A stretch of 64,000 bases of DNA from Epithemia pelagica (taxonomy: Eukaryota; Protista; Bacillariophyta), in the NCBI GenBank assembly GCA_946965045.2, contig OX337231.1, positions 3,348,001 to 3,412,000 on the forward strand, in the 5' to 3' direction. The notes beneath the pieces are model-generated. The model had not been told where the DNA came from. It did not search any database and saw only the letters and a list, made by a program, of their open reading frames with translations. Shown piece by piece: positions 15,550-28,694 of this stretch (positions are counted from its first letter, which is position 1; every line of letters begins with the position of its first letter). The position numbers and the translations under genes are program-made.

Positions 15550-18500
15550 TTACTTGTTCAATTGGATCCGCCCCGTGACTTCGTTTTGACAGAGTGGACA
15601 CGTGTCAATATGGTCAAACTTGGAAGAACAGTCGGCACAAATGGACAAATGAAAGCAGGGTTTCATGACCACCACGCGCGGATTTTGCTCGCAAATGAGG
15701 CACAAAAAGTCATTCGCAGCCGAGGCATCCTTGTCTTTTCCGCTTTGCTGTTCCGGAATGCTTCCCAGTGGTTTATTCAAGGAAGGGGACTTTGTACCCA
15801 AATTCAACTTGATGGAAGGTTGTTTCCGCTTTCGCTGTTGGCCTTTTCCCTTGGCATCAGGTGTCGATGATACAGAGCTTGCAATTGAATCTTCTTCTTC
15901 GTGTTCACCTGTTTCGTCAACCACTTCCTTCCAACGAAAGGCAACCCTGTCAAATGTCATTCGTTTCTTTGGGCCAGTGCTCAACGTGCTGGATTCGGAA
16001 ACACTCTGTGGACCTGGTTGTTTTTGGACCCATCTCATTGTCAGTCTGTCAAATTGAGCGACATGATCGTCCTTTCGTCGCGGCATCTCTGCAACCGAAT
16101 AGGAGCGATGGCTGGAGCATGTGGACAATTCATCGATCGTGTCAGATTGGGCGACCGACAATGACTCCGATGACACAACAAGAGGATTGTGATCCTTCTC
16201 GGATACAACAGTGCGGCTCGTTTCGGCTCCTTTGCCCTTAGAGGCTATTGGATTCGTGTCATGATGGGTGCCATTCGTGTGACCCGCATTGGAGACAGGG
16301 AACGACGATTTGGGCTCGGAAGTATCCTGTACGAGGCCATCTCTTTCCGGTGCTGGTATTGATGCAGTAACCTGCAAGCCCCCACTGCATTCTGACATCG
16401 AGTCCAAAGAATTAGAATCACCATCCGACGGATGGCCATCAGCACTGACAGCCGAGTCGACCGATTCATTGGTGCTTTCTTGGTCAACAGCGGAATCTTT
16501 TAGGGGCTTCGCTTGTACATGAGGGTTTTTAGCCGATATTTGCACGGCATCAGTTTCCAGCCCATGATCATGGTTTTTGTGGGAAAAGTCTTCCATAGAA
16601 GTTTCATGTCCAAGATCGTCGTCTCTTGCGATAACATATGACGATTCTGGCTTTGTGTTGCCAACGGATTGAACGCGTTCTGGTTTTGTATTCACTTTTG
16701 GAGATTCCGGTTGTTTATCGAAGAGATTCACAAGTTCTTTTACCGAGTGCCCTCTCGTTAGCTCGCGCCCCTTGTTGAGTCGATCCTCGGCATTGCTTGA
16801 TTCAGCAAGCAACCCAGGTTGTGTCTCTTTCTTGTCACCTTTTGGAAGCTCTATTTTTGTGCCATTCGGCTTGCCAAGAGAGTGTCCATGAGTGTCGTTC
16901 GACAAGGCAGGCCCACGTTTCTCTGGCTCTAATGCCGCCGTCGAGGATTTCTCATTCCAAATGTTCTCTTTCTGCTCAACCTCTATACCATTCTTGTCAC
17001 CTTCCACTTTGTTGATCACAGCCTCATCTTTTCCCTCGATTTCAATGAGAATATCTTCCTCAACGCTTGATTCGTCAGAGTTATCACCATCCGCTAGAAC
17101 TGATTTTGGCCGCCTACTATCTGCAACAAATTCCATCACACTCGAGGACTCACTTCCGTCGTCGCAAGAAACAAGGTTGTTTGTTCCGAGAGCCCTGAAT
17201 GAGACAGATTTTGAGGATCTCTGTGACACGGAGCGTTTCGAGTGATCCGAGTCTACAAAGAGAATCATTTCTTTACTCTCATCCAAAGTTGTTTCGAGCA
17301 GTCCATGGCCTCTGTTCCCCTCTGTGATCGACGTTTTGTTCTTGTTCCTTGTCTCTTTCAATTCGGTATCGTCTCCTAGCCAAACCATTCCAACGGCACC
17401 AGCATCGATCATATCGAAAGGCAATGTCATTGAACGATATGAGTTGTCTCCAGACCGAACGGAATTGCTATGAGCTGGTTCAGAGCGACCATGAGAGGAG
17501 GAGTACAGGTTATTTCCATTTCCTTCGCTCTTTTTCTGAACCAGTTCGTCCTCGGCAATATCGCTTATTTTCCCTTTCACTCCATGACGTTCGTTTTCGG
17601 TTCGACCATAATCGGAGTTCCTTTCAGATTTGGATTCTTTCGGACTTGCTTGGCTCGCACCACTTAGACTTCCTGTTGCGAATGACTTTTCTTCATATGT
17701 AGCAAAGGACCTATCAGATGTGGCAAAAGACTTGATCGTCTTGGTCGAACCCTCTGTCGCAAATGATTTGAAAGTGTGTTTCGACTCGCCGCCCTTGTGC
17801 GAGGTTGTGAGATCCGAAAGATGAGATCTCAATGAAGTCACACTCCCTCGTTTAAAGGTATCACTGGATTGAGAGGATGCCACGGACTTGGTTCGTTTTG
17901 GAGCTGCCCTGCCCTTTGTTTGCTGAGTTGTCCCCGTTGCAGTTGACATCTCGGCAATCTGACCACTCGCTCGAATACTAACTGGAAGCCGAGCGAAGGA
18001 AGCCTCCCTTTCTTCCAACGAATCCCGTGATCTACGTCTGTACTCAAAAGTCACAAGACCACCATATTCCGAATCCTCGGAATCGGATTCATTCTCGTGG
18101 TCCACCGCCCGAAGTAAATCGCTCGGGACCGGGAGACTCAAAGCTGCAGACGACTCATCACCGGCAAATGTGCAACTGGCATCCCCGATGTCAGATTCAC
18201 ATGCAAATTCGTAAGCTGAGGACTCTCCTCCTTCTGTTACGGAAACTGAATCATCACTTCCTTCTTCCTCGTCAAAGCTCTCTGCGGCAAGCAAGGTATT
18301 GTTCCCGGCAGCCATGCTATGTGCGGTGACATTCACCATACTGTGTGCCGTCACATTATGAAGGGTTGAAGAAAGAGTTGACATGACATCCAGATTCGAC
18401 AAAATTGATGCATCGCATTCGTACACGTCCCCGACAGCAGGAGTTCTTGTTTCGTGTTTGGACAGCAAGCTCATCAAAGTAGTCTTTTCCGGTCCATCCT

Positions 18501-21500
18501 GCACTCGGCTTCCCTGTGAAGACAAAGTTGCTTTAGAAGGAGTTCGCTCTAGACCAGAGCGACTGCTTCTATTACTTCCCTGTGATTCCAGTTCCAGCAT
18601 TTCACTTCCGTGACCGCTCGAGTCTAAATCTGGGATTCCAGCATTACTGATCGCGATAGAGTCAAGGTCGGGAAGAGGAGTTGCTTCGCTGTTGACGCTA
18701 GCGTCAACAGGTCCGGTTTGTTTCCTTCGAGGAGAGCCCAGGACGGCGGGGATATAACCCTGTATCTGTCTTGTGTTTCCAGCATTTGGATCCAACAGAT
18801 GGCGAATAGGAGAGGCGAGAGGAGGCGTCGGAGAGTGGGCATTGTTCGAGGACGAGTAGATTGTATCGGCTTCCGTCAAAGACTTCGACGTGTCGGTATG
18901 GTCATGATCGGCCAGGTAGGAGTGAGCACCACGGCGTTCTGTCGCGGCCGAGGTTTCGGTCCCTTCTTCCTCCTCCTCCGCGGCAGCATTCGGAAATACG
19001 CGAGACCGTTCCGTCGCAACGTAAGAAGCAGTTTCTTGTCGAGCGGGTTGTATCATTGTCACATCTGCCCGAAGAAGTTCAAAGATACTGCTCAACACGT
19101 TGCGATCATGGTTCTTTTGATGTTGATAAACGGCATTGGTTTGCTCAAAGGGACTTAGCTTGTTCCAATCGGCCAGCGATCCCTCATTGCGCGCCATGAA
19201 CAAAAACCGCACACGATCTTCCCGGGTGAACTCCCGTTTGACCGCCATGAGCTGAAAGGGATACAAGTTGGTCGTTGGATCTCGACGCCGCAATACTCCT
19301 GGATCTGGTTGGACCAAGGGTTCCAGTTCGTCCTCCCAATGGACACGGCCTGCTTGAATCGCCAAATGTAAGGGTACCTTTCCTTCGTCCGTCGTCTCAC
19401 TGACCGCCTGGCTATAGGCATCCACCAACAAGGAAATTAACGATTGTTGACTGCGTAGGTTGGTTTCGTAGTGACGAGGAATGTAGGGACAGGTTTGGAC
19501 GGCCAAATGCAAGGGTAGTACATGCGTACCAGGAATTGGTAGAGATGCGGAGGCCACAGAAACAGCCAAAATCAATTCCACCACAGTCGGTGGTGTATCG
19601 GGGTTCAAGACAGCCATGTGTAAGGTATATTGTTCGTTGCTGGTGGGCAAAAAAATGGACACAATGGAATTGCTATGAGACAAGAGCCTCGGCGATGGCT
19701 TGGGACAGCAATACTTGATCCAAAATCTCATTTTATTCCACCATCGTTCAAATTCTGGCGACAAGCTGGACCAATCGCCCTTGGGTGCCAAATCAATGGC
19801 AGCTTCCAAATTACGTATATGCTCCTCCACGGGTTTCCGGTGTGCCCCATCACTTCCGGCTTTGTGAAAGAGATAATTCAAATAATGTTGAGCGACCGTC
19901 CCCATACCGGAATCATCCCGTGCTTCTCGAATGGGTCCCTTTTTCTTATGACTGGCTTTGGGACCGGCCGCTGCTTCCACGACAGAGGGTGCCCATCGCA
20001 ACAATTGAAAGACAGTCGATGTGCGTTCCAAGACTTCCGACACGAAGTATTGTTTTTGGACGGCATTGCTTCGTTGTCGGTCACTGAGTCCCCGCCAGAC
20101 ATGATGGGTATACTTATTCCGAGCACTAAAGGCCCATCGCGAATGGGCATTGTATTTGCCATTGGGTCCAAACAAGGCACCTTCCGCTTCTTGTTCCAAA
20201 CCGGTGCCAACGGCAGCCACATGCAAAAAGGGAACCAAGTGTGTTCCTGGATCTCGACAGAGCAGTGTTTCGGGAGCAGCATTGACCAAGGGTTGAAGAC
20301 TGCCCAATTTGCCGGCCGCAATAGCCAAATGCAAAGGAAGTCGTCCTTTGTACCGTTGGTGCACGCAGGAGTGATCGGCATGAGTGACAATCTCCGTCGT
20401 GGAAAGTGACGAGGAGGAAAGGTTGGAACAAACATAGCTTCCTTCCAATTGCAATTCGTAATTTCGAGGAATGTAATCCGGTGTGACACAGGCCAAATGG
20501 ATGGGCAAACTCCCTTCCATATCACTGGGTGCCGGTGTCGTCAAGGCCATGGAGTCGGGATACAAGGCCAACAAGAGTCGTGAGACCAACGGTGGTACAT
20601 CGGAATTGGACAAGGCGGCATGCAACAAATACTGCGAGGGGTAATTCTTGTCCGCCGACAATTTCTGGCCTGTCCCAAAGGCAATGAGAAATTCCATCTT
20701 TTTCCACCAATCCCAAAATCCCGGATGATCGTCCTGGGGCGGCAAGGAGCCCTGTTGGAGCAAATGGGCCGCTTGTTCCACAAAGTCCGTCACCAAGACC
20801 CATTCTTCCGTGACAGCCGATAGTTTGCGGAAAAAGCCAGCTACGAATTGGGCAGCCACCAAACCCATACCGGTTTCATCTTGAACCAGTCGGACATCGC
20901 GGGGACATTGCAAACAGAGCGATACCAAAATAGTCAAGGGATAATGTCGGTAGATACACGTGTACAAAGTAGTGCCAGCAAAGGCAGTCGCTCGTTTTTC
21001 AAAGGTGAGATAGCCCACCGAAGCTCCAATGAGCAAGGAAATGACCGCTGGTGGAGCCGCAAAGACAAGAGATTCAACCAACATGGGTCTTTTGCCTCCC
21101 ACTGTGAGCGAGGTTTGTGGATGTGTGGCCGACGCCAACAACAGCCAATGCACAATGGACCAACGATCCACTTGTTCTTCTTGCCATTGATTTGCCGCAC
21201 GGACACTGTCATCCTCATCGGCCGATTCTGTAGGTGGTGGCGGCAACTCTTTTTGGGCCATCCAGAAATTTCGGGGTGCGTCGGGCAAATTCGTGTCGGC
21301 CTTGGCTCGTTCACAGGCATAACTGAGTGGCGATTGTTGCTGGGCGTCCAATTCGGAAATTCCTGCTGGATAGGCTTCGACGAGACCGGCAATGACTTCC
21401 AAATGCATTTGATTCATGACGGCGGTATGCAACGGAAATCTACCTCCCGAAGATGCTTGTTCCGGAATGGCGGCCGCACGAGGTTCCAATCGAATCAAAT

Positions 21501-21945
21501 AGAGAACAATGTCGGTTGGAGTCTTTTCCGGATGGTTCAAACAAAAATTCAAGGCGGTCCTTCCAGTTCCCTTTTGTTGTTTCAGCAAACCTCCTTTCAT
21601 ATGTTGCAATTTGGAATTTCCAGGATTGGCAGCAGCTTCTTCGTCTCCCACGACCGAATTGGCAATCCGTCTCCAAAACGACTTTTGTTGCTTTTGTGTT
21701 TCTTCGTCGTTGCGGATCACCACTTGCGTGTCTTGTTGTGAGACGGCCAAGGATAAAATGCCACGCAGATGTTCCCACCGATTGAATTGAATGGCAGTGG
21801 TAATCTCTCGGAACCAGTCCATCGAGTCCTCATCGCCATGATTGCGACGCCGTCGTCGTCGGCTTCGATTCGCCGTGTCCAAACTGTATTTCGGATGTGA
21901 CTCGGGGGACGGTGTGGTTTTTGGTGTGGCGCTTTCCACCTGCAT
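15550..21945 (-). CDS. Large ankyrin-like repeat protein with C-terminal RING finger (putative E3 ubiquitin ligase)
   Basis: Repeated FPLH/LPIHLA/LPLHLA motifs in the N-terminal half; C-terminal CLIC...PCFHLSICADC...CPLC (C3HC4, IAP-like spacing). Start uncertain: ATGs at 22110 and 21945. Confidence 0.8.
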   Translation of the reverse strand: MQVESATPKTTPSPESHPKYSLDTANRSRRRRRRNHGDEDSMDWFREITTAIQFNRWEHLRGILSLAVSQQDTQVVIRNDEETQKQQKSFWRRIANSVVGDEEAAANPGNSKLQHMKGGLLKQQKGTGRTALNFCLNHPEKTPTDIVLYLIRLEPRAAAIPEQASSGGRFPLHTAVMNQMHLEVIAGLVEAYPAGISELDAQQQSPLSYACERAKADTNLPDAPRNFWMAQKELPPPPTESADEDDSVRAANQWQEEQVDRWSIVHWLLLASATHPQTSLTVGGKRPMLVESLVFAAPPAVISLLIGASVGYLTFEKRATAFAGTTLYTCIYRHYPLTILVSLCLQCPRDVRLVQDETGMGLVAAQFVAGFFRKLSAVTEEWVLVTDFVEQAAHLLQQGSLPPQDDHPGFWDWWKKMEFLIAFGTGQKLSADKNYPSQYLLHAALSNSDVPPLVSRLLLALYPDSMALTTPAPSDMEGSLPIHLACVTPDYIPRNYELQLEGSYVCSNLSSSSLSTTEIVTHADHSCVHQRYKGRLPLHLAIAAGKLGSLQPLVNAAPETLLCRDPGTHLVPFLHVAAVGTGLEQEAEGALFGPNGKYNAHSRWAFSARNKYTHHVWRGLSDRQRSNAVQKQYFVSEVLERTSTVFQLLRWAPSVVEAAAGPKASHKKKGPIREARDDSGMGTVAQHYLNYLFHKAGSDGAHRKPVEEHIRNLEAAIDLAPKGDWSSLSPEFERWWNKMRFWIKYCCPKPSPRLLSHSNSIVSIFLPTSNEQYTLHMAVLNPDTPPTVVELILAVSVASASLPIPGTHVLPLHLAVQTCPYIPRHYETNLRSQQSLISLLVDAYSQAVSETTDEGKVPLHLAIQAGRVHWEDELEPLVQPDPGVLRRRDPTTNLYPFQLMAVKREFTREDRVRFLFMARNEGSLADWNKLSPFEQTNAVYQHQKNHDRNVLSSIFELLRADVTMIQPARQETASYVATERSRVFPNAAAEEEEEGTETSAATERRGAHSYLADHDHTDTSKSLTEADTIYSSSNNAHSPTPPLASPIRHLLDPNAGNTRQIQGYIPAVLGSPRRKQTGPVDASVNSEATPLPDLDSIAISNAGIPDLDSSGHGSEMLELESQGSNRSSRSGLERTPSKATLSSQGSRVQDGPEKTTLMSLLSKHETRTPAVGDVYECDASILSNLDVMSTLSSTLHNVTAHSMVNVTAHSMAAGNNTLLAAESFDEEEGSDDSVSVTEGGESSAYEFACESDIGDASCTFAGDESSAALSLPVPSDLLRAVDHENESDSEDSEYGGLVTFEYRRRSRDSLEEREASFARLPVSIRASGQIAEMSTATGTTQQTKGRAAPKRTKSVASSQSSDTFKRGSVTSLRSHLSDLTTSHKGGESKHTFKSFATEGSTKTIKSFATSDRSFATYEEKSFATGSLSGASQASPKESKSERNSDYGRTENERHGVKGKISDIAEDELVQKKSEGNGNNLYSSSHGRSEPAHSNSVRSGDNSYRSMTLPFDMIDAGAVGMVWLGDDTELKETRNKNKTSITEGNRGHGLLETTLDESKEMILFVDSDHSKRSVSQRSSKSVSFRALGTNNLVSCDDGSESSSVMEFVADSRRPKSVLADGDNSDESSVEEDILIEIEGKDEAVINKVEGDKNGIEVEQKENIWNEKSSTAALEPEKRGPALSNDTHGHSLGKPNGTKIELPKGDKKETQPGLLAESSNAEDRLNKGRELTRGHSVKELVNLFDKQPESPKVNTKPERVQSVGNTKPESSYVIARDDDLGHETSMEDFSHKNHDHGLETDAVQISAKNPHVQAKPLKDSAVDQESTNESVDSAVSADGHPSDGDSNSLDSMSECSGGLQVTASIPAPERDGLVQDTSEPKSSFPVSNAGHTNGTHHDTNPIASKGKGAETSRTVVSEKDHNPLVVSSESLSVAQSDTIDELSTCSSHRSYSVAEMPRRKDDHVAQFDRLTMRWVQKQPGPQSVSESSTLSTGPKKRMTFDRVAFRWKEVVDETGEHEEEDSIASSVSSTPDAKGKGQQRKRKQPSIKLNLGTKSPSLNKPLGSIPEQQSGKDKDASAANDFLCLICEQNPRVVVMKPCFHLSICADCSSKFDHIDTCPLCQNEVTGRIQLNK

Positions 21946-22780
21946 GGTTGTAGGGAGTTTTGCTTTCTTGGACGAGACAAGATTAGGGAAGATTGTCAAT
22001 CGTTCTGGACACAGACAGGAGGCCAAAGTTCTCACGTCTGCTTGGTTGGAGTTCACACCTGCCGCTACCCACGATTTCTTTCCATGGCCACAATGGCGGA
22101 GAGTTTGCATATTTTCTTCCAGACGAGCAATCAATCAAGTCATACTCTTTTGTCGAGCCGGCCGGCGTCTCTGTGCCTCCCGTTATGTCTATTGCCCTTT
22201 TGGTCTTTGGTCTGATCGTGGACACACCACCAAACGGGAAGCGACTCCACGCACATGCAATGAGAAGAAAGCTCGCGTTCCGCTTTCAATGTGGTCAGTG
22301 CTCCCAAAATGAATAAGTGCGAACGAAAAAACGTGGAAACGGAGCAAAAGGCCCATCCAAGGATCAGTTGGGAGCGAACGAAATGCCCAATTGAGCAATG
22401 TATTAATTATTATTGCTACTCCTTCTCGTACTCGTACTCGTACTTCCATGAAGGCCCAAATCAATAAAACACCCAATGAAATGTCATAACGAACAGAGGA
22501 AAAATCAACGAGTACAGGGCAATAGTTAGGTCCCCATCTTAACACTCCCTACGGAAATTCCCAACCATAGACTGGGACACCCGTGATTTTGGTTCCCACT
22601 AGAGAATTTTACCTATTCCGGCAACTGGGTAGCTAGGGCTGATCGCTGTTTTAGCTAGCTAGCTTTATTTTCTGTACTCTTATTATAGTAATGTAACGAC
22701 ACGTGCTTAAATCAAATAATTAAGTTAACAATTTCTTTTTCGATGTCGCAACTGAGTCGTGGATTGGGATAATCGCTAAA

Positions 22781-22960
22781 TGTTTCGAGTTTGTGTCATG
22801 TCTTGTTTCGGGTTGGTCCCGTATTTAACGGCTGGTTTCGACTTTGTTTCGACTTTGTTTCGACTTTGTTTCGACTTTGTTTCGACCTGGTGTCGACTTT
22901 GTTTCGGCTTGTTTCGGTTGGTATCGACTTTGTTTCGACTTTGTTTCGGTTTGTTTCGAC
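22781..22960. repeat. Left subterminal tandem array, 11-bp unit TTTCGACTTTG
   Basis: Roughly a dozen perfect and degenerate units; four perfect copies from ~22835. Confidence 0.9.
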
Positions 22961-23100
22961 CCATGATGGCGAACACAATAATCAACCATGGTCGCTCAAT
23001 GTCGCTAATGGTGGCACGATGAGTGACTCGAGCGAGTGAGAGGGGAGATTCTTGTTCACCGCAGGGACAGTCATAAAACAAAGCAACAGACAAGACAAAT

Positions 23101-23559
23101 ATGGTGGAGAAGAAATCGTCGAATCTTCCACCCATCAATGAAAGAAAGGGGGCAAGGATCAAGATTGTGCTGGGAGACTACAAGGGATTGCGAGCATGGG
23201 TGGACACGGCGAAGGAATGCACTCGCCTCTACACGTATGTGATCATCCAAGTGAAAACAAGTCCTACGGTTCTGAAGGCAACAAGGATTCTACACACAAG
23301 TTTTGTGATGGAGGCTGATGTCCGGCTCCCATCAAACAAGGAGGAGGCAATGCTTTTTGAGAATGCAGACATTATGGAGATGTTCATGGTGCTCACAAGG
23401 AAAATGGCTGAGTTCGAGGAGATCTCAGGATCAGGAGAAGGAGGAAAACGAATTGCAACTCTGTTCTTGTCATACCTCAATAGAGCCATTGCTGCACAGA
23501 ATGCCTTACCCAATGAAAAGGCCCGCTGGCGTCGCATCAAGTTCAAGGGACAGCATTAG
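23101..23559 (+). CDS. Transposon accessory ORF1, 152 aa, KOW-like N-terminus
   Basis: Intact ATG-stop ORF inside the TIRs; KGARIKIVLGDYKGLRAWV resembles a KOW motif. Confidence 0.65.
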   Translation: MVEKKSSNLPPINERKGARIKIVLGDYKGLRAWVDTAKECTRLYTYVIIQVKTSPTVLKATRILHTSFVMEADVRLPSNKEEAMLFENADIMEMFMVLTRKMAEFEEISGSGEGGKRIATLFLSYLNRAIAAQNALPNEKARWRRIKFKGQH

Positions 23560-23643
23560 CATACATGAATAACTAATAGGAGTAGTGCATTTCAAACAAA
23601 GAATTCGCTTTTACTATGTAGTCAATTACTAGGGGCGTACTGG

Positions 23644-25032
23644 TTAGTCTTCAAACATGCTCTTGGCCTCGGCCTCCTTCTTCTTCTCAGATTGCTTACC
23701 ACCAATCTTTTTGCCTCCCTTGAGAGCAATGCGCCAAAACAGGGTCATGGCCAGGATTTCTTTGTTGAAGAGGTTTTCTGGGTGGTCCTTCTTTAGCTTG
23801 AGAGGGTTCTTGGTGACTGGCACGATGTTATCGTCCAACGAGAAAATCTTGTTCTCAAGCTGAACGCCGGGCGGGAAAACCATGATCCAGTAGGCACTAG
23901 CACGCCAGTGTTCTTTGGACTCTTCAATCGCAACCTCAGTCGCACTGTGTGCGTTGAAAGTTGCGTCACACTTGATCTTCGACTCCCTGCCAATCCCCGT
24001 ATGGTAGCGCTCCGTATCACGAATCCAAAAATCTTGAGCGGGGCCCCTGAAACGGATGAGTCGTCCTTTCCACATCTCGTTGTAGTCGTCCGTTGGGATG
24101 TCCGCTTCCCAGTCGTTCATATCCGGGCAGGCAACGGGCTCTTGGTTGATGTTTTCGACGAACTGGACATCGAACTCGCGGTGTCGCTCGGCCATCTTGT
24201 CTAGACGGATCGGAATCACCCATGGATTCTTGACTGTACCATTCTGGTTCACAAACCAGGCAGTGGGTACAAAGGCATGTGCCACGTTGGTACGGGCGGC
24301 CTGGGCAACAAGAGGAGAAAGGCGTCCGAAGCGATGCTGTTGTTGGCCAGGGTTAAAGCCACCAGCATGCGCAACAGGACAGGGTGGAGTGTGAAACATC
24401 CTCACAGCTTCTTGGTTTTGGGCCGCCGGGAGAGATGGGACGCTGGCCCTTGCAGCAGGCTTCCTGTCGTCGGCAAGAGAAACCTGGCCAAAGTCTGCTT
24501 CAAGCTGGTCCACGTTGTCATTTGCAAAGGGATTTCCAATCCCAACCATCGCATATGGGTCTTCTTCTTCTTCGTCGGGAACGATGATCTCTTTATCAGA
24601 CGCGTTGCCGGAGAAGGCTGGTTTGTCGGGGTAGGCTGGTTTCTTGTTCATCTCTTCGAGGCTTTTGGGACCGGGTGTCACACCAATCTTTTTCAAGTAT
24701 GCAATGTAGGCCCTGATTGAGCGGCCCTTGCACTTTGCCCAACGTTGCTGCACTTGCCTGCGAAGCACGGTTCCTTCGGCTCCAAATGTGGTCGGGTTGG
24801 CTGAACACAGTGCCCAGAGGTCAAATGATTCCCTTGTCTCGCCGGACAGTTCAAAGGCTTCAAGGAGGGTCTTGGTTTTCTCAGCACTCAATCCACCTGG
24901 CGCCGGCTTCTTTCGTTGCAAGGTTCCAATCGACGGTTGTTCTTGCTGATCTTGGGCCTCACTGTTGACAGAGTCAACAACCCAATCTTCCTCTTCGTTG
25001 ATTTGCGAAAGTTTGTCTTGTGAGATCTCCAT
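23644..25032 (-). CDS. Transposon accessory ORF2, 462 aa, unknown function
   Basis: Intact ORF inside the TIRs (ATG 25032); small helical N-terminal domain (LLEAFE...LWALC...FGAEGTVLRRQVQQRW), P/A-rich linker, globular C-terminal region. Confidence 0.7.
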   Translation of the reverse strand: MEISQDKLSQINEEEDWVVDSVNSEAQDQQEQPSIGTLQRKKPAPGGLSAEKTKTLLEAFELSGETRESFDLWALCSANPTTFGAEGTVLRRQVQQRWAKCKGRSIRAYIAYLKKIGVTPGPKSLEEMNKKPAYPDKPAFSGNASDKEIIVPDEEEEDPYAMVGIGNPFANDNVDQLEADFGQVSLADDRKPAARASVPSLPAAQNQEAVRMFHTPPCPVAHAGGFNPGQQQHRFGRLSPLVAQAARTNVAHAFVPTAWFVNQNGTVKNPWVIPIRLDKMAERHREFDVQFVENINQEPVACPDMNDWEADIPTDDYNEMWKGRLIRFRGPAQDFWIRDTERYHTGIGRESKIKCDATFNAHSATEVAIEESKEHWRASAYWIMVFPPGVQLENKIFSLDDNIVPVTKNPLKLKKDHPENLFNKEILAMTLFWRIALKGGKKIGGKQSEKKKEAEAKSMFED

Positions 25033-25453
25033 GTTTGTTTGTCGAATGGGCAAACGGAGAGAAAACAATCTCCTGGGATCGAGCGAGTGAGTCGTCTACC
25101 TACCGAGATTGCCAATCCTGGTTTGGCATCTACATCAATGGATAACAAATAAACATCGTTTGATTGTCATGTGCATATGTAATAGGATGTCTATTTCGGC
25201 GCAGCCTTCTTTGCTTGTGCTCACGAGTTGAGAACTCGTGAATCTGCAGGCGCATCATGTGTCTCTCCTACTACCCACGGGTCCTAATCATGGGGGTCCC
25301 CCGCCGTGTGAGACAGGCGTGGAGTTCTTGAACACTTTTGTGACAGAAGACAGAAACCTACCTACTAGTGAGTGACCTTCCCGAGTGCCAATAGAGTTCT
25401 TGTCCCCAAGAATCCATCATTGCATTCGTCACCACATTTTCAACAATCAAAGA

Positions 25454-26377
25454 ATGTCTCTTCAACCGTCGGAAGTCCTCGAAAGGGGCCTACGGCTTCT
25501 TCATGTGGATGATGCGGGCAAATTGACATTGGAACGACGACGACTCAAGTTTACGAAGCACTACGGGTCTCACCCGTTGGTGATTGCTGCGCAATGGTTC
25601 AACCTATGCCACGCAACAGACGACAATGGCGAGGAACTACTATCTACGAATGAAATCAAAAGAGGAGGATTCAAGATGTTCATGGTTGCACACTTTTTCC
25701 TCTACAAGTACACGAGAAATAGTGAGCAGCTCAGTGATCGCTTTGACATGTGTGAGTGCTATGCGAGAGGAGAGCATTTGTGGGGGTGGATTCGGAAAAT
25801 TGCGTTTCTCCAGAAGAAGGTAATTTTCTGGCCGAGAATTCTTGACAGTCCCGAGTCTGAGGTTAATGTGTTGTCCGTGGATGGTGTCGACAAAAAAGTT
25901 TTCGAGCGCAAGCACAAGACTCAAATGCTTCCGTTCGATCGTGGGAACTGCTCTCACAAGCATGCGCACGGTGCTCTGAAATACCAAATTGTTTTGGCAG
26001 CACATCGACCGAGGTGTGTTCACATATATGGCCCCGTGCGTGGGGGAATGGGGGGCTTGGAGATGCTCGAACGGTCCGGCGTGTTGGAACGACTCAAGCC
26101 AGGCAAATTGATTGTGGCTGATCGTGGGTACATTAAGAAGGAGTACAGTGGGAAAATATCCTGGCCCAATCCCCATGAAGATTCCAAACAAGCCAATAAC
26201 CTCAAGAGCCGGATCCGTCTTCAGCATGAAAGTTTCAATGGAAAAATGGCTACTTTTGGATGCCTCAACCAGACATGGAGGCATTCGGACAAGAAACACG
26301 GCATAGCATTTCGTGCAGTCGCTGTGACAGTTCAGTATGCACTTGACAATGGCACAAGTCTCCTATTTGAGCCGTAG
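25454..26377 (+). CDS. DDE transposase, PIF/Harbinger-ISL2EU (IS5-like, DDE_Tnp_4-type)
   Basis: LSVDGVD (D1), SHKH..GALKY, HIYGP.RGG, IVADRGY (D2), RIRLQHESFNG (E), WRH...KHG.AFRAVAV. Confidence 0.85.
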   Translation: MSLQPSEVLERGLRLLHVDDAGKLTLERRRLKFTKHYGSHPLVIAAQWFNLCHATDDNGEELLSTNEIKRGGFKMFMVAHFFLYKYTRNSEQLSDRFDMCECYARGEHLWGWIRKIAFLQKKVIFWPRILDSPESEVNVLSVDGVDKKVFERKHKTQMLPFDRGNCSHKHAHGALKYQIVLAAHRPRCVHIYGPVRGGMGGLEMLERSGVLERLKPGKLIVADRGYIKKEYSGKISWPNPHEDSKQANNLKSRIRLQHESFNGKMATFGCLNQTWRHSDKKHGIAFRAVAVTVQYALDNGTSLLFEP

Positions 26378-26425
26378 ATTCATCCATAAATTCAATGTAG
26401 TTGAGATTTGGTTTTCTACTATGTT

Positions 26426-27022
26426 TTACTTGTAGGCTAGGATGTGGTTTGCAAGTTCTCGGCGTCGCATCAATTCGTCCATTGGAGAGACAGCAGGTAG
26501 ATTGAGCTTCTGTTTGGCTTCCTCTTCCTTGAGCCGCAAGTAGTTGAAGTAGCGCACTCGTCTCACTTCTTGGTAGATTCGAAACTTGAAGATTTCTAGC
26601 TTGAATGCCATATAGGCGGGACGCGTCTTCCTCAGTGCCATGGGCGTCAATTTCAAGTGAACGCCATTGGCCACGTCCATCCGGAGAAGCTTCTTTGCTG
26701 GATGGACGTCGAAGACCAGCTCTCCACGGCAGTTCCGGTCCTTTCTTGGATGGACGTGACGGTCAACATGGTGCGCCTTGTGGTCACGGTCCACCAATTC
26801 CTGCGCGTTGTTTGATTGTTTGCGGTGGTCCTTCAGTCGTTCCTTGAATTGATCGAAAGGAACATTCGCAAACTCGGGAAGCTTCTTGTAGAACACAAAC
26901 AAGTGGTCAGCCGGAACTGCATCCATGCTGTGAAGGAGACCGCCTGGCTCAAGATCTCGAATAAGGATGGCTCGTGCTGCACTGCGACGCCAGTCAATCC
27001 ACTCAGACCTTCGTGGCGGCAT
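26426..27022 (-). CDS. Transposon accessory ORF4, 198 aa, two Myb/SANT-like repeats (putative DNA-binding partner)
   Basis: ATG at 27022 (MPPRRSEW); repeat 1 WRRSAARAILIRDL...PEFANVPFDQFKERL; repeat 2 VHPAKKLLRMDV...PAYMAFKLEIFKFRI. The longer track ORF to 27196 merely runs through the repeat array. Confidence 0.7.
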   Translation of the reverse strand: MPPRRSEWIDWRRSAARAILIRDLEPGGLLHSMDAVPADHLFVFYKKLPEFANVPFDQFKERLKDHRKQSNNAQELVDRDHKAHHVDRHVHPRKDRNCRGELVFDVHPAKKLLRMDVANGVHLKLTPMALRKTRPAYMAFKLEIFKFRIYQEVRRVRYFNYLRLKEEEAKQKLNLPAVSPMDELMRRRELANHILAYK

Positions 27023-27025
27023 GGC

Positions 27026-27184
27026 TTGGTTTCGACTTTGTTTCGAGTTGGTTTTGGTTTGTTTCGGCTTTGTTTCGACTTTGTTTCGGTTGGTTTCGGG
27101 TTGTTTCGACTTTGTTGCGACCTTGTTTCGACTTTGTTTCGACTTTGTTTCGACGTTGTGTCGTGGTTTCGACATTGTTTCGAG
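27026..27184. repeat. Right subterminal tandem array, 11-bp unit TTTCGACTTTG (same strand orientation as the left array)
   Basis: Roughly a dozen perfect and degenerate units, e.g. ttcgactttgtttcgactttgtttcgac at ~27127-27153. Confidence 0.9.
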
Positions 27185-28694
27185 CCAGCAGGTCAAGGCT
27201 TTTTTGGCGAAACCCTATATTAACGGTCATAATAAATGTTGGTCTTGATGCAAGATCAAGTCTCATTAATACTTGTAATCAACGGAAATCGAATTCTTAA
27301 GTACAACTCTCATTGTATTGTAGGTAGTCGCTGAAATCACACTGTACTGAATAGGAAGACTACTATGAAAGCGGAAAAGTCCATACCGCTGCCAAAGTAG
27401 CGGGTGTCCCTGACGTGGTGTGTTGTTACTCGGAAGCTACCACAAAACTACATCGAATACTCGTGTAATTATTCGTAATGGCCAAAAAGACAAACACTGC
27501 AGCAAACGAGACCAACACGACAAGAGAGACATCCAATCTTCTGTGGACTTGCAATCTATGGTCCTCATCAAGATGTGGAAACGAGAGCAACCACACGCGT
27601 TTCTCGACCACTGCGATTATCACTGAAAGCGCTTGCTCTGATTCTTGTTCGTTGGAGCAACTCTTGTTGGAAGTCCACGCCTCAAGAAACTAGGCGTGTT
27701 GTGTCGTTTCAACTTCATGGCCCCTTCAGCGCACTGCATCTATACTCTCAAGTTGCGTACAGGAATCCCATTGCCTTGCGCACGAGATCCATCTACAACC
27801 TTGAATTGGGACTGAGATGTTCCCGTCCCTCGTTGTGCAACCCATCCTATTAGCGCAATGGTCCGAAGAGCAATACCACAACTATGTAGGATAGCTTATC
27901 GTGGATGTGAGCAGAAATTCATAATTTCTCCACTCCTAGGAAGTGAAGTCCTTGTGTGAGAAAAAACTAGTAGCAGCACTACTACTTTCCTCCTCTCTCG
28001 AGCTCTAGGGGTAGTTTTACGAAGTTACAAAACCTGGCGAGTAAAGAGTAAAGACATAATTCAAGGCTTCCTACCTCCTACATGATGTGTATGAGTCTAT
28101 TCGTAAGTTGCAAGCTGGACATGAAAGAGACTTCTTTTGATTTTCACTTTTCACGTCGTCCAGAGACATGGTCCGAAGGGGGCGACGCACGGACGAGAAG
28201 CGAGGCTCATGTGAGATGTGGGATCAAAAAATGGATGCGCCATGACCATGACCATGACCGCCATGACTTTTTCTTACTCGTACTCGTACTTATACAATCT
28301 ATCTTACTCTGGATTAATGAATGTCTCTCCGGGACCAAATCTATTTATTTCGCAATAGTGACTGGTGACGTCATAGCATAGGTTCTCATTGCAGTAATTT
28401 CATCGAAATTGCTGTGACCTGGCGATCGTCATGAACCCTCCGATTATGGAAAGCTACGAACGAGACTTGAGGTTGCAGGGTTTGATTCGTCAGGTTTCTT
28501 CGCCCAATAAAATTTTGGAACTGGACGCAAAGGTGCTTCCATCACATTTTTCTAGCCCGCAAAGTGCATTCGGTATTGCCGCTAGAAACTTCGTTGCATT
28601 CACCTCCGCCTCCCATCAGCTGCCCCAGTGGAGAGACCATTTCACAAGCAATCGTGTGTCCAAAAGATCAATTGAAGACATCTACAAGTGAAGC

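Follow-up and report, generated by a model that had tools for sequence, protein, structure and literature searches.

A young four-gene PIF/Harbinger-superfamily transposon with CWG target site duplications in the diatom Epithemia pelagica

Harbinger is the textbook two-component eukaryotic DNA transposon, and it is the source of several domesticated gene pairs of hosts, among them HARBI1/NAIF1, ALP1 and HDP1/HDP2. Here we describe an element of the PIF/Harbinger superfamily (PHIS) that carries four genes. It lies at positions 22575-27409 of a stretch of 64,000 nucleotides from the genome of the diatom Epithemia pelagica (contig OX337231.1, positions 3,348,001 to 3,412,000, forward strand), and this whole stretch is called the window below. 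The element shares with the canonical members of the superfamily, such as Harbinger3_DR and Ping/Pong, a DDE_Tnp_4 transposase, short terminal inverted repeats (TIRs), a target site duplication of 3 bp and genes arranged in tail-to-tail pairs. It also shares with them subterminal short repeats and derivatives resembling miniature inverted-repeat transposable elements, of the kind that is mobilised in trans. In zebrafish Harbinger3_DR, the Myb-like partner protein binds a 9-bp motif within the subterminal repeats, and this protein is required along with the transposase (PMC9710019). The canonical elements differ from the present one in that their usual duplication is TWA or TNA, that two proteins suffice, and that the partner protein is recognisable as Myb/SANT/MADF.

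Two other groups of elements are close to ours. The NuwaI group, described by Han et al. in 2015 and found only in animals, has CWG duplications, TIRs starting with GGG, a mean size of 4.46 kb and two open reading frames (ORFs), namely a transposase and a Myb/SANT protein (PMC4482050). The diatom element resembles this group, as judged by the described features only, in its CWG duplication, its G-run termini, its size near 4.46 kb and its DDE transposase without another domain. In contrast to NuwaI, it possesses four conserved ORFs in which no Myb/SANT domain was detected, and its host is a stramenopile. The second group consists of PHIS elements that stably hold genes beyond the canonical two, that is, HarbingerS of oomycetes with a SET methyltransferase gene, and PHISTA of rust fungi with TET/JBP and a third, non-Myb protein (PMC12730594). 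The diatom element shares this gene-rich character, and the third protein of PHISTA is likewise without Myb/SANT. Unlike these elements, however, it has no SET or TET/JBP Pfam domain in its four ORFs; its extra genes encode three small, non-enzymatic-looking proteins of unnamed families, and its duplication is CWG, not TA. In the brown alga Ectocarpus, all autonomous Harbingers were reported to be two-gene elements (PMC12477816). No description of the present four-gene set was found in the literature searched, a scope that leaves Repbase outside. We thus regard the four-gene element as an unusually gene-rich form of the Harbinger type, whose members normally have two genes, and not as a new kind.

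The ends of the element were examined first in the window and then in the whole genome (60.5 Mb, 23 contigs). At the left end, CTG is followed directly by GGACACCCG, and at the opposite end CGGGTGTCC stops at position 27409 and is followed by CTG again. The element thus spans 4,835 bp, and its termini are GGGACACCC. A repeat finder gave terminal arms of 19 nt at 22574-22592 and 27392-27410, which are 84% complementary and perfect in the outer 10 nt. A DNA search of the genome detected 8 full-length copies, in which the similarity starts and stops exactly at these termini. Each full-length copy is bordered by CT-GGGAC...GTCCC-TG or by CA-...-AG in element orientation; that is, the flanks are a CWG duplication having its G or C in common with the terminal base of the element. 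In a sister family (65% transposase identity), all 8 copies examined had the same AGCGGGTGTCCC end followed by AG or TG, and environmental relatives had the ends GGGTGT(C/T)CC followed by TG or AG.

The combination of CWG and GGACACCCG (pattern CWGGGACACCCG) occurred 98 times in the genome, compared with 5 times for the reversed control. When plus and minus termini within 15 kb of each other were paired (pair sizes 1.2-12.8 kb), the same CWG stood on both sides in 30 of the 35 pairs (binomial p = 1e-5). A first-pass annotation, made from the window sequence alone, had proposed short TIRs with CTG flanks at 22575-27409. These coordinates proved to be exact, the same end bases recur in the 8 full-length copies, and the recurrence of the TIR with CWG at other copies, which had been suggested as a check, was observed. 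Since the terminal G or C can be assigned either to the TIR or to the duplication, a 3-bp CWG and a C-[W]-G duplication are inseparable by sequence alone. At the junction CWG-GGACACCC, the TIR starts with GGG if the common G is counted with it, and with GG if all of CWG is assigned to the duplication. A 3-bp stagger is the known behaviour of the PIF/Harbinger superfamily, and we chose the 3-bp CWG reading on this basis.

The transposase gene, ORF3, matched DDE_Tnp_4 (PF13359) with an E-value of 4e-10, over the gathering score, and all seven aligned homologues matched it too, in agreement with the superfamily membership that had been proposed. Two of the features by which PHIS elements are recognised are present, namely a DDE_Tnp_4/IS5-like transposase, and TIRs with a short (0-3 bp) duplication recurring at independent copies. 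These results confirm that 22575-27409 is a cut-and-paste DNA transposon of the PIF/Harbinger superfamily, which inserts at CWG and duplicates CWG. The features of the element are listed in Table 1.

Table 1. Positions in the window of the parts of the element.
Feature	Position	Strand	Basis
Left target site duplication, CTG	22572..22574	.	Sequence; CWG match genome-wide
Left TIR, (G)GGACACCCGTGATTTTGG	22575..22592	+	19-nt inverted repeat; identical ends in 8/8 copies and in families B and C
Left array, GTTTCGACTTT (11 bp) repeated 11.7 times, with the ATG of ORF1 about 140 bp downstream	22835..22960	+	
ORF1, 152 aa, KOW-like N-terminal motif (weak) and predicted helical tail, no Pfam family	23101..23559	+	
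ORF2, 462 aa (480 aa in intact copies), predicted helical N-domain, disordered acidic linker and C-terminal β-sandwich	23644..25032	-	
Central intergenic region between divergent ORF2 and transposase genes, presumed bidirectional promoter (from the geometry)	25033..25453	.	
ORF3, DDE transposase, 307 aa, DDE_Tnp_4	25454..26377	+	
ORF4, 198 aa, two predicted tandem three-helix modules, no Pfam family	26426..27022	-	
Right array, 15 copies of GTTTCGACTTT, beginning 3 bp upstream of the start codon of ORF4	27025..27183	+	Direct-repeat family
Right TIR, CCAAAGTAGCGGGTGTCC(C)	27392..27409	-	Inverted repeat; ends of all copies
Right target site duplication, CTG	27410..27412	.	Sequence; CWG match genome-wide

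The copies in the genome indicate how recently the element has moved. The four copies L002-L005, each on a different contig, share 99.90-99.98% identity, and compared with these four the window copy has an identity of about 99.0%. In L001-L006, every one of the four ORFs is intact. Thus, the element family is young, multi-copy and very recently active.

Several particular copies were also observed. In the copy L007 (G000:C5:1948192-1953079), a stop interrupts the transposase gene and ORF4 is truncated; next to the left end of this copy lies GGGACACCCGGCATTTTGGTTCCCCCA, a solo TIR-like fragment of 27 bp, and just past this fragment there is another related one. Two family A copies on one contig, L005 (G000:C8:2266507-2271405) and L008 (G000:C8:2533889-2540089), share their insertion site within a paralogous sequence: 12-13 bp are the same on one flank, and on the other the similarity extends over about 860 bp (91% identity). 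Relative to that flanking sequence the two elements have opposite orientations, and L008 also has an internal insertion of 1.3 kb. The two copies look like independent insertions at the same site of a repeat, a pattern that hints at a target preference beyond CWG. At G000:C18:2129335-2154622, four minus-strand termini (CTG followed by GGACACCCG) are spaced 5,078-5,081 bp apart; a single plus-strand terminus lies 10 kb upstream of them, and no ORF1-4 protein matches were listed there. A tandemly repeated unit holding one transposon end may account for these periodic termini.

We then asked whether the four genes belong together. Each of the four ORFs starts with ATG and is open, and the gaps between the stop codons are 84 bp for ORF1/ORF2 and 48 bp for ORF3/ORF4, so that the two tail-to-tail pairs are as the first reading of the window had stated. 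This arrangement could suggest a composite, in which one two-gene element is nested in or fused to another, because two tail-to-tail pairs correspond to twice the usual two-gene Harbinger layout. However, each element has one transposase gene, one TIR pair and one duplication pair, the ORF1/ORF2 pair was never seen as an element of its own among the genome loci, and the structure is identical in all copies. A composite origin is therefore scarcely credible.

Whole-genome protein searches, clustered by position, gave 27 loci with all four genes inside about 4 kb, and these loci span at least six diverged families. The commonest order is ORF1+ ORF2- Tnp+ ORF4- (Tnp, transposase), and a more distant set shows the order ORF1- Tnp+ ORF2- ORF4+. 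The same gene set was found on metagenome contigs. In four of them (L041-L044) the genes stand in mirror order, and the identities to the window are 31% for ORF1, 32% for ORF2, 48% for the transposase and 48% for ORF4. Two others (L046 and L050), with a transposase identity of 37-38%, have all four genes in the second order, and the small ORF next to their transposase is alignable to ORF1, the KGxxIxFIAGKYAGKKGWID motif included. A transposase was next door in every non-genome context examined; two of these contexts, P0047 and P0053, derive from the ENA sample that also yielded L037 and leave the taxonomic breadth unchanged. At the thresholds used, six genome loci gave matches only to the transposase and ORF4. 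We observed the transposase (about 42% identity) with an ORF4-like gene (about 32%) only, about 2 kb apart, at C16:893312-900342, C7:3689525-3692941, C5:2082141-2085449, C6:1713949-1717412 and C13:2826984-2830313. The gap of about 2 kb may conceal strongly diverged ORF1 and ORF2 or another gene set.

In order to see whether selection acts on these genes, we compared subfamily A (L002) with subfamily B (L031, L032 and L037), between which synonymous sites are near or past saturation (dS 0.6-2.1). The ratio of nonsynonymous to synonymous substitution rates (dN/dS) was 0.05-0.06 for ORF1, 0.16 for ORF2, 0.10-0.12 for the transposase and 0.15-0.16 for ORF4. The low dN/dS values in spite of the nearly saturated dS indicate that all four ORFs encode proteins maintained by selection in the element lineage.

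These data also bear on the idea that the element took up ORF1, ORF2 and/or ORF4 from the host by transduplication, as passengers without a role in it. Transposons do capture host genes, and the ORF2 family is large (1030 clusters), with a genomic context known for only a dozen contigs. Against this, the same three genes stand alongside transposases that are 37-65% identical, in two gene orders, with purifying selection on all of them between element subfamilies and with a transposase adjoining them in every context examined elsewhere. Moreover, no full-length free-standing copy of ORF1, ORF2 or ORF4 was found in the 60.5-Mb genome; the solitary matches were all partial (87-510 bp), so that no free-standing host paralogue was found. 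We consider capture very unlikely. The first-pass annotation had taken ORF1 and ORF2 to be encoded by the element, and the 27 loci, the environmental contigs and the dN/dS values of 0.05-0.16 bear this out. When ORF1, ORF2 and ORF4 were looked for as host genes outside TIRs, homologues appeared only beside the transposase or as short fragments. Taken together, the results show that the four co-inherited proteins belong to the element, that is, a predicted DDE_Tnp_4 transposase and three putative accessory proteins without a named family.

The predicted structures of the accessory proteins were then considered. For ORF4, a word search gave 34 relatives, all of them unnamed. An alignment-based AlphaFold (AF2) model had a mean predicted local distance difference test score (pLDDT) of 90.7 and showed three-helix modules at about residues 5-93 and 98-165, with the motifs W..W..S.AR..L..DLEPGG and AK.LLR.DV..G.H. 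VIA-align related the model to homeodomain, FF, GARP/Myb and SANT domains with Z values of 4.5-6.1, a range that, according to the notes of the tool, is compatible with a common helical arrangement. A look-alike search of ESM-Atlas with ORF4 gave no usable match. From these models ORF4 appears to be the best candidate for a Myb-like partner, although none of the three accessory proteins is demonstrably canonical. The right array is open in the ORF4 frame at 27023-27196 on the minus strand, upstream of ORF4. For this reason, mechanical ORF calls and some database models lengthen ORF4 by about 50-70 residues encoded by the repeats (a 256-aa TTG ORF; 267 aa in P0007). This lengthening is probably an artefact, since the alignment of all homologues begins at MPPRRS.

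Among 1.84 billion representatives from public metagenome and genome data, the ORF2 family was matched by 1030 clusters, formed at 50% identity, with E<=1e-3 and by 593 with E<=1e-10. When 65 members were compared with Pfam, no recurring family was obtained, only six scattered weak matches in at most two members each, and the 10 clusters that were looked up had no name and derived from ENA, JGI or Logan only. The model of ORF2 has a confident helical N-domain (about residues 48-130), a disordered acidic linker (about 137-260) and a confident α/β C-domain (about 265-465). With the C-domain, most of the top 50 rows of VIA-align were β-sandwiches of the HSP20/α-crystallin or CS/p23/Sgt1/NudC type, with Z values of 4.2-6.5, which weakly suggests that the C-domain is an HSP20/CS-like β-sandwich. 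The N-domain gave weak helix-turn-helix matches (Z 4.2-5.1). Residues 54-66 of ORF2 and residues 18-30 and 108-120 of ORF4 have in common the short motif (A/K)xxLLxD(I/L)ExxG. We considered homology of the ORF2 N-domain with the ORF4 modules on the basis of this motif (LLxD(I/L)ExxG) and rejected it, because the hhalign probability was 0.2%.

The N-terminal motif of ORF1 is KGxxIxxxxGxYxGxxGWxD. The Pfam families KOW and KOW5_SPT5 were matched at an E-value of about 0.06 by one of eight members, which is too weak to count. With a profile of ORF1 against the Protein Data Bank (PDB), the top four matches were all ribosomal protein uL24, aligned on the KOW-like motif with E-values of 0.14-0.8, and in ESM-Atlas the look-alikes scored at most 0.83, with a KOW cluster among the leads at 0.80. 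These matches point, weakly and consistently, to a KOW-like motif in ORF1. Sequence searches of the PDB with ORF2 and with profiles of ORF4 and ORF1 gave nothing significant, and the same was true of a profile of the transposase.

In the transposase, the motifs of D143 (SVDGVD), D223 (DRGY) and E259 (HESFNG) are conserved, and these residues are invariant in the alignment. By analogy with the IS5 and Harbinger motifs, we take D143/D223/E259 to be the catalytic triad. In the window copy, residue 201 is Gly (GGC, 26054-26056), whereas it is Asp in every other copy and homologue. We once considered Gly201 as the loss of the second catalytic Asp. This idea was dropped, because DRGY contains the second Asp of the IS5 type, favouring the above triad. 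As the triad is more likely D143/D223/E259, D201G means the loss of an otherwise invariant residue and no more. The ORF2 of the window copy has, compared with intact siblings, in-frame deletions of 36 and 18 nt (12 and 6 residues), and the larger one takes out the conserved DGFFTRSGFHIRR segment (GFHIR strand), a β-strand in the model. Each of its arrays also differs from those of the siblings by one 11-bp unit. With D201G and 18 residues of ORF2 gone, the window copy is probably defective and not autonomous, a point that had escaped the first reading; against this judgement, Asp201 lies outside the triad, so that its loss may leave activity in place. As its ends are intact, the window copy could be mobilisable by intact siblings.

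The subterminal arrays gave a further clue to the functions of the accessory proteins. Both arrays of family A, the family of the window copy, are on the same strand. In subfamily B, TGGTTTCGAGT is repeated 13.8 and 15.8 times at equivalent places, and in family C the unit is different, TGTATCGG(G)T, repeated 12 times. That is, families A, B and C all have arrays at both ends, with family-specific units of 9-11 bp. Many paired termini are shorter than the gene-carrying elements of 4.8-5.1 kb. Three of these were inspected (L034, 3.2 kb; L036, 1.8 kb; and L031:185-1497), and all were without the four genes; L034 and L036 keep the TIRs and both same-strand arrays. The derivative at L031:185-1497 is 1.3 kb long, has TIRs of the family C type and TTGTATCGG arrays, and adjoins a family B element (L031:1503-6540; G000:C9:3211475-3217834). 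Between these neighbours, two CTG duplications stand one C apart (...GTCC CTG C CTG GGAC...). By analogy with Harbinger3_DR, the arrays are likely to be binding sites of the DNA-binding accessory protein or proteins of the element.

We therefore think, with a probability of about 0.7, that this young PHIS element has a multi-protein transposition system composed of the transposase and three accessory proteins. In such a system, the transposase would cut and join at the GGGACACCC termini, and sequence-specific accessory proteins on the subterminal arrays would bring it to the ends. The array binder would most likely be ORF4, whose two modules are homeodomain/Myb-like, or the helical N-domain of ORF2, or both, in parallel to the Myb-like partner of canonical Harbinger. 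The HSP20/CS-like β-sandwich of ORF2 and the KOW-like barrel of ORF1 may serve as assembly, bridging or regulatory subunits, and the gene-less derivatives, which hold only TIRs and arrays, would be mobilised in trans.

Several observations weigh against a multi-protein transposition system. The arrays are on the same strand at both ends, unlike mirrored end-recognition sites, and they fall within the regions presumed to be the ORF1 and ORF4 promoters, so that a regulatory role is conceivable instead. In a Pfam search of the four ORFs and their homologue sets, lax thresholds included, DDE_Tnp_4 alone was obtained and no Myb/SANT/MADF. The canonical Myb/SANT partner that the first reading had led us to expect among the ORFs thus failed to appear: ORF1, ORF2 and ORF4 have no such Pfam match, and there are weak fold hints in ORF4 and in the N-domain of ORF2. 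A Foldseek search of the PDB with the models of ORF4 and ORF2 gave nothing at E <= 0.001. The fold matches of the accessory proteins are all weak, with Z values of at most 6.5, and the KOW E-values are above 0.05.

Alternatively, the three extra proteins might act on the host response, for instance as anti-silencing, chromatin or transcription-elongation factors, and protect the expression of the element, rather than being cofactors of transposition. In plants, the VANC protein protects the expression of VANDAL elements. A VANC-like anti-silencing role, which the first-pass annotation had mentioned, would be a pure analogy here, the likeness being the family-specific repeat arrays. A KOW-like ORF1 and a CS/HSP20-like ORF2 would suit regulator roles, the arrays overlap the presumed promoters, and the three proteins are strongly conserved, yet without the canonical Myb/SANT signature. 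HarbingerS with its SET gene, and PHISTA with TET/JBP and its third non-Myb protein, provide precedents (PMC12730594). However, neither an enzymatic nor a chromatin-reader domain was detected in ORF1, ORF2 or ORF4, and a 307-aa transposase that matches the catalytic family only still needs a DNA-binding partner. In addition, the arrays are kept in the gene-less derivatives, which fits cis-acting sites of transposition better than promoters of lost genes. It seems rather unlikely, therefore, that the three proteins are regulators of this kind instead of participants in the multi-protein transposition system.

A bolder conjecture, which we hold to be distinctly doubtful, is that a Harbinger lineage abundant in diatoms and other marine protists has swapped the two-protein system for a four-protein machine. 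In this machine ORF4 would bind the arrays, and the KOW-like ORF1 and the ORF2 protein with its co-chaperone-like CS/HSP20 fold would link either transposition or the transcription of the element to the Pol II elongation, chaperone or silencing pathways of the host. If this were true, it would represent an undescribed kind of transposon-encoded counter-silencing or assembly module.

Outside the element, a single ORF of 2,194 aa occupies 15550-22134 of the window on the minus strand and ends about 440 bp from the left end of the element. It has ankyrin repeats and a C-terminal C3HC4 RING finger, and is presumably a host gene similar to an E3 ligase.

The three extra proteins, maintained by selection across transposases of about 37-65% identity, suggest that the machinery or the regulation of Harbinger elements is more elaborate than has been assumed. 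The range of CWG-targeting (Nuwa-like) elements, so far reported from animals, now reaches to a diatom, and three orphan protein families gain names and context. In addition, a young and apparently intact family, in which four copies are at least 99.9% identical, together with its natural non-autonomous partners, is suitable for transposition assays, and the element could become a genetic tool for diatoms.

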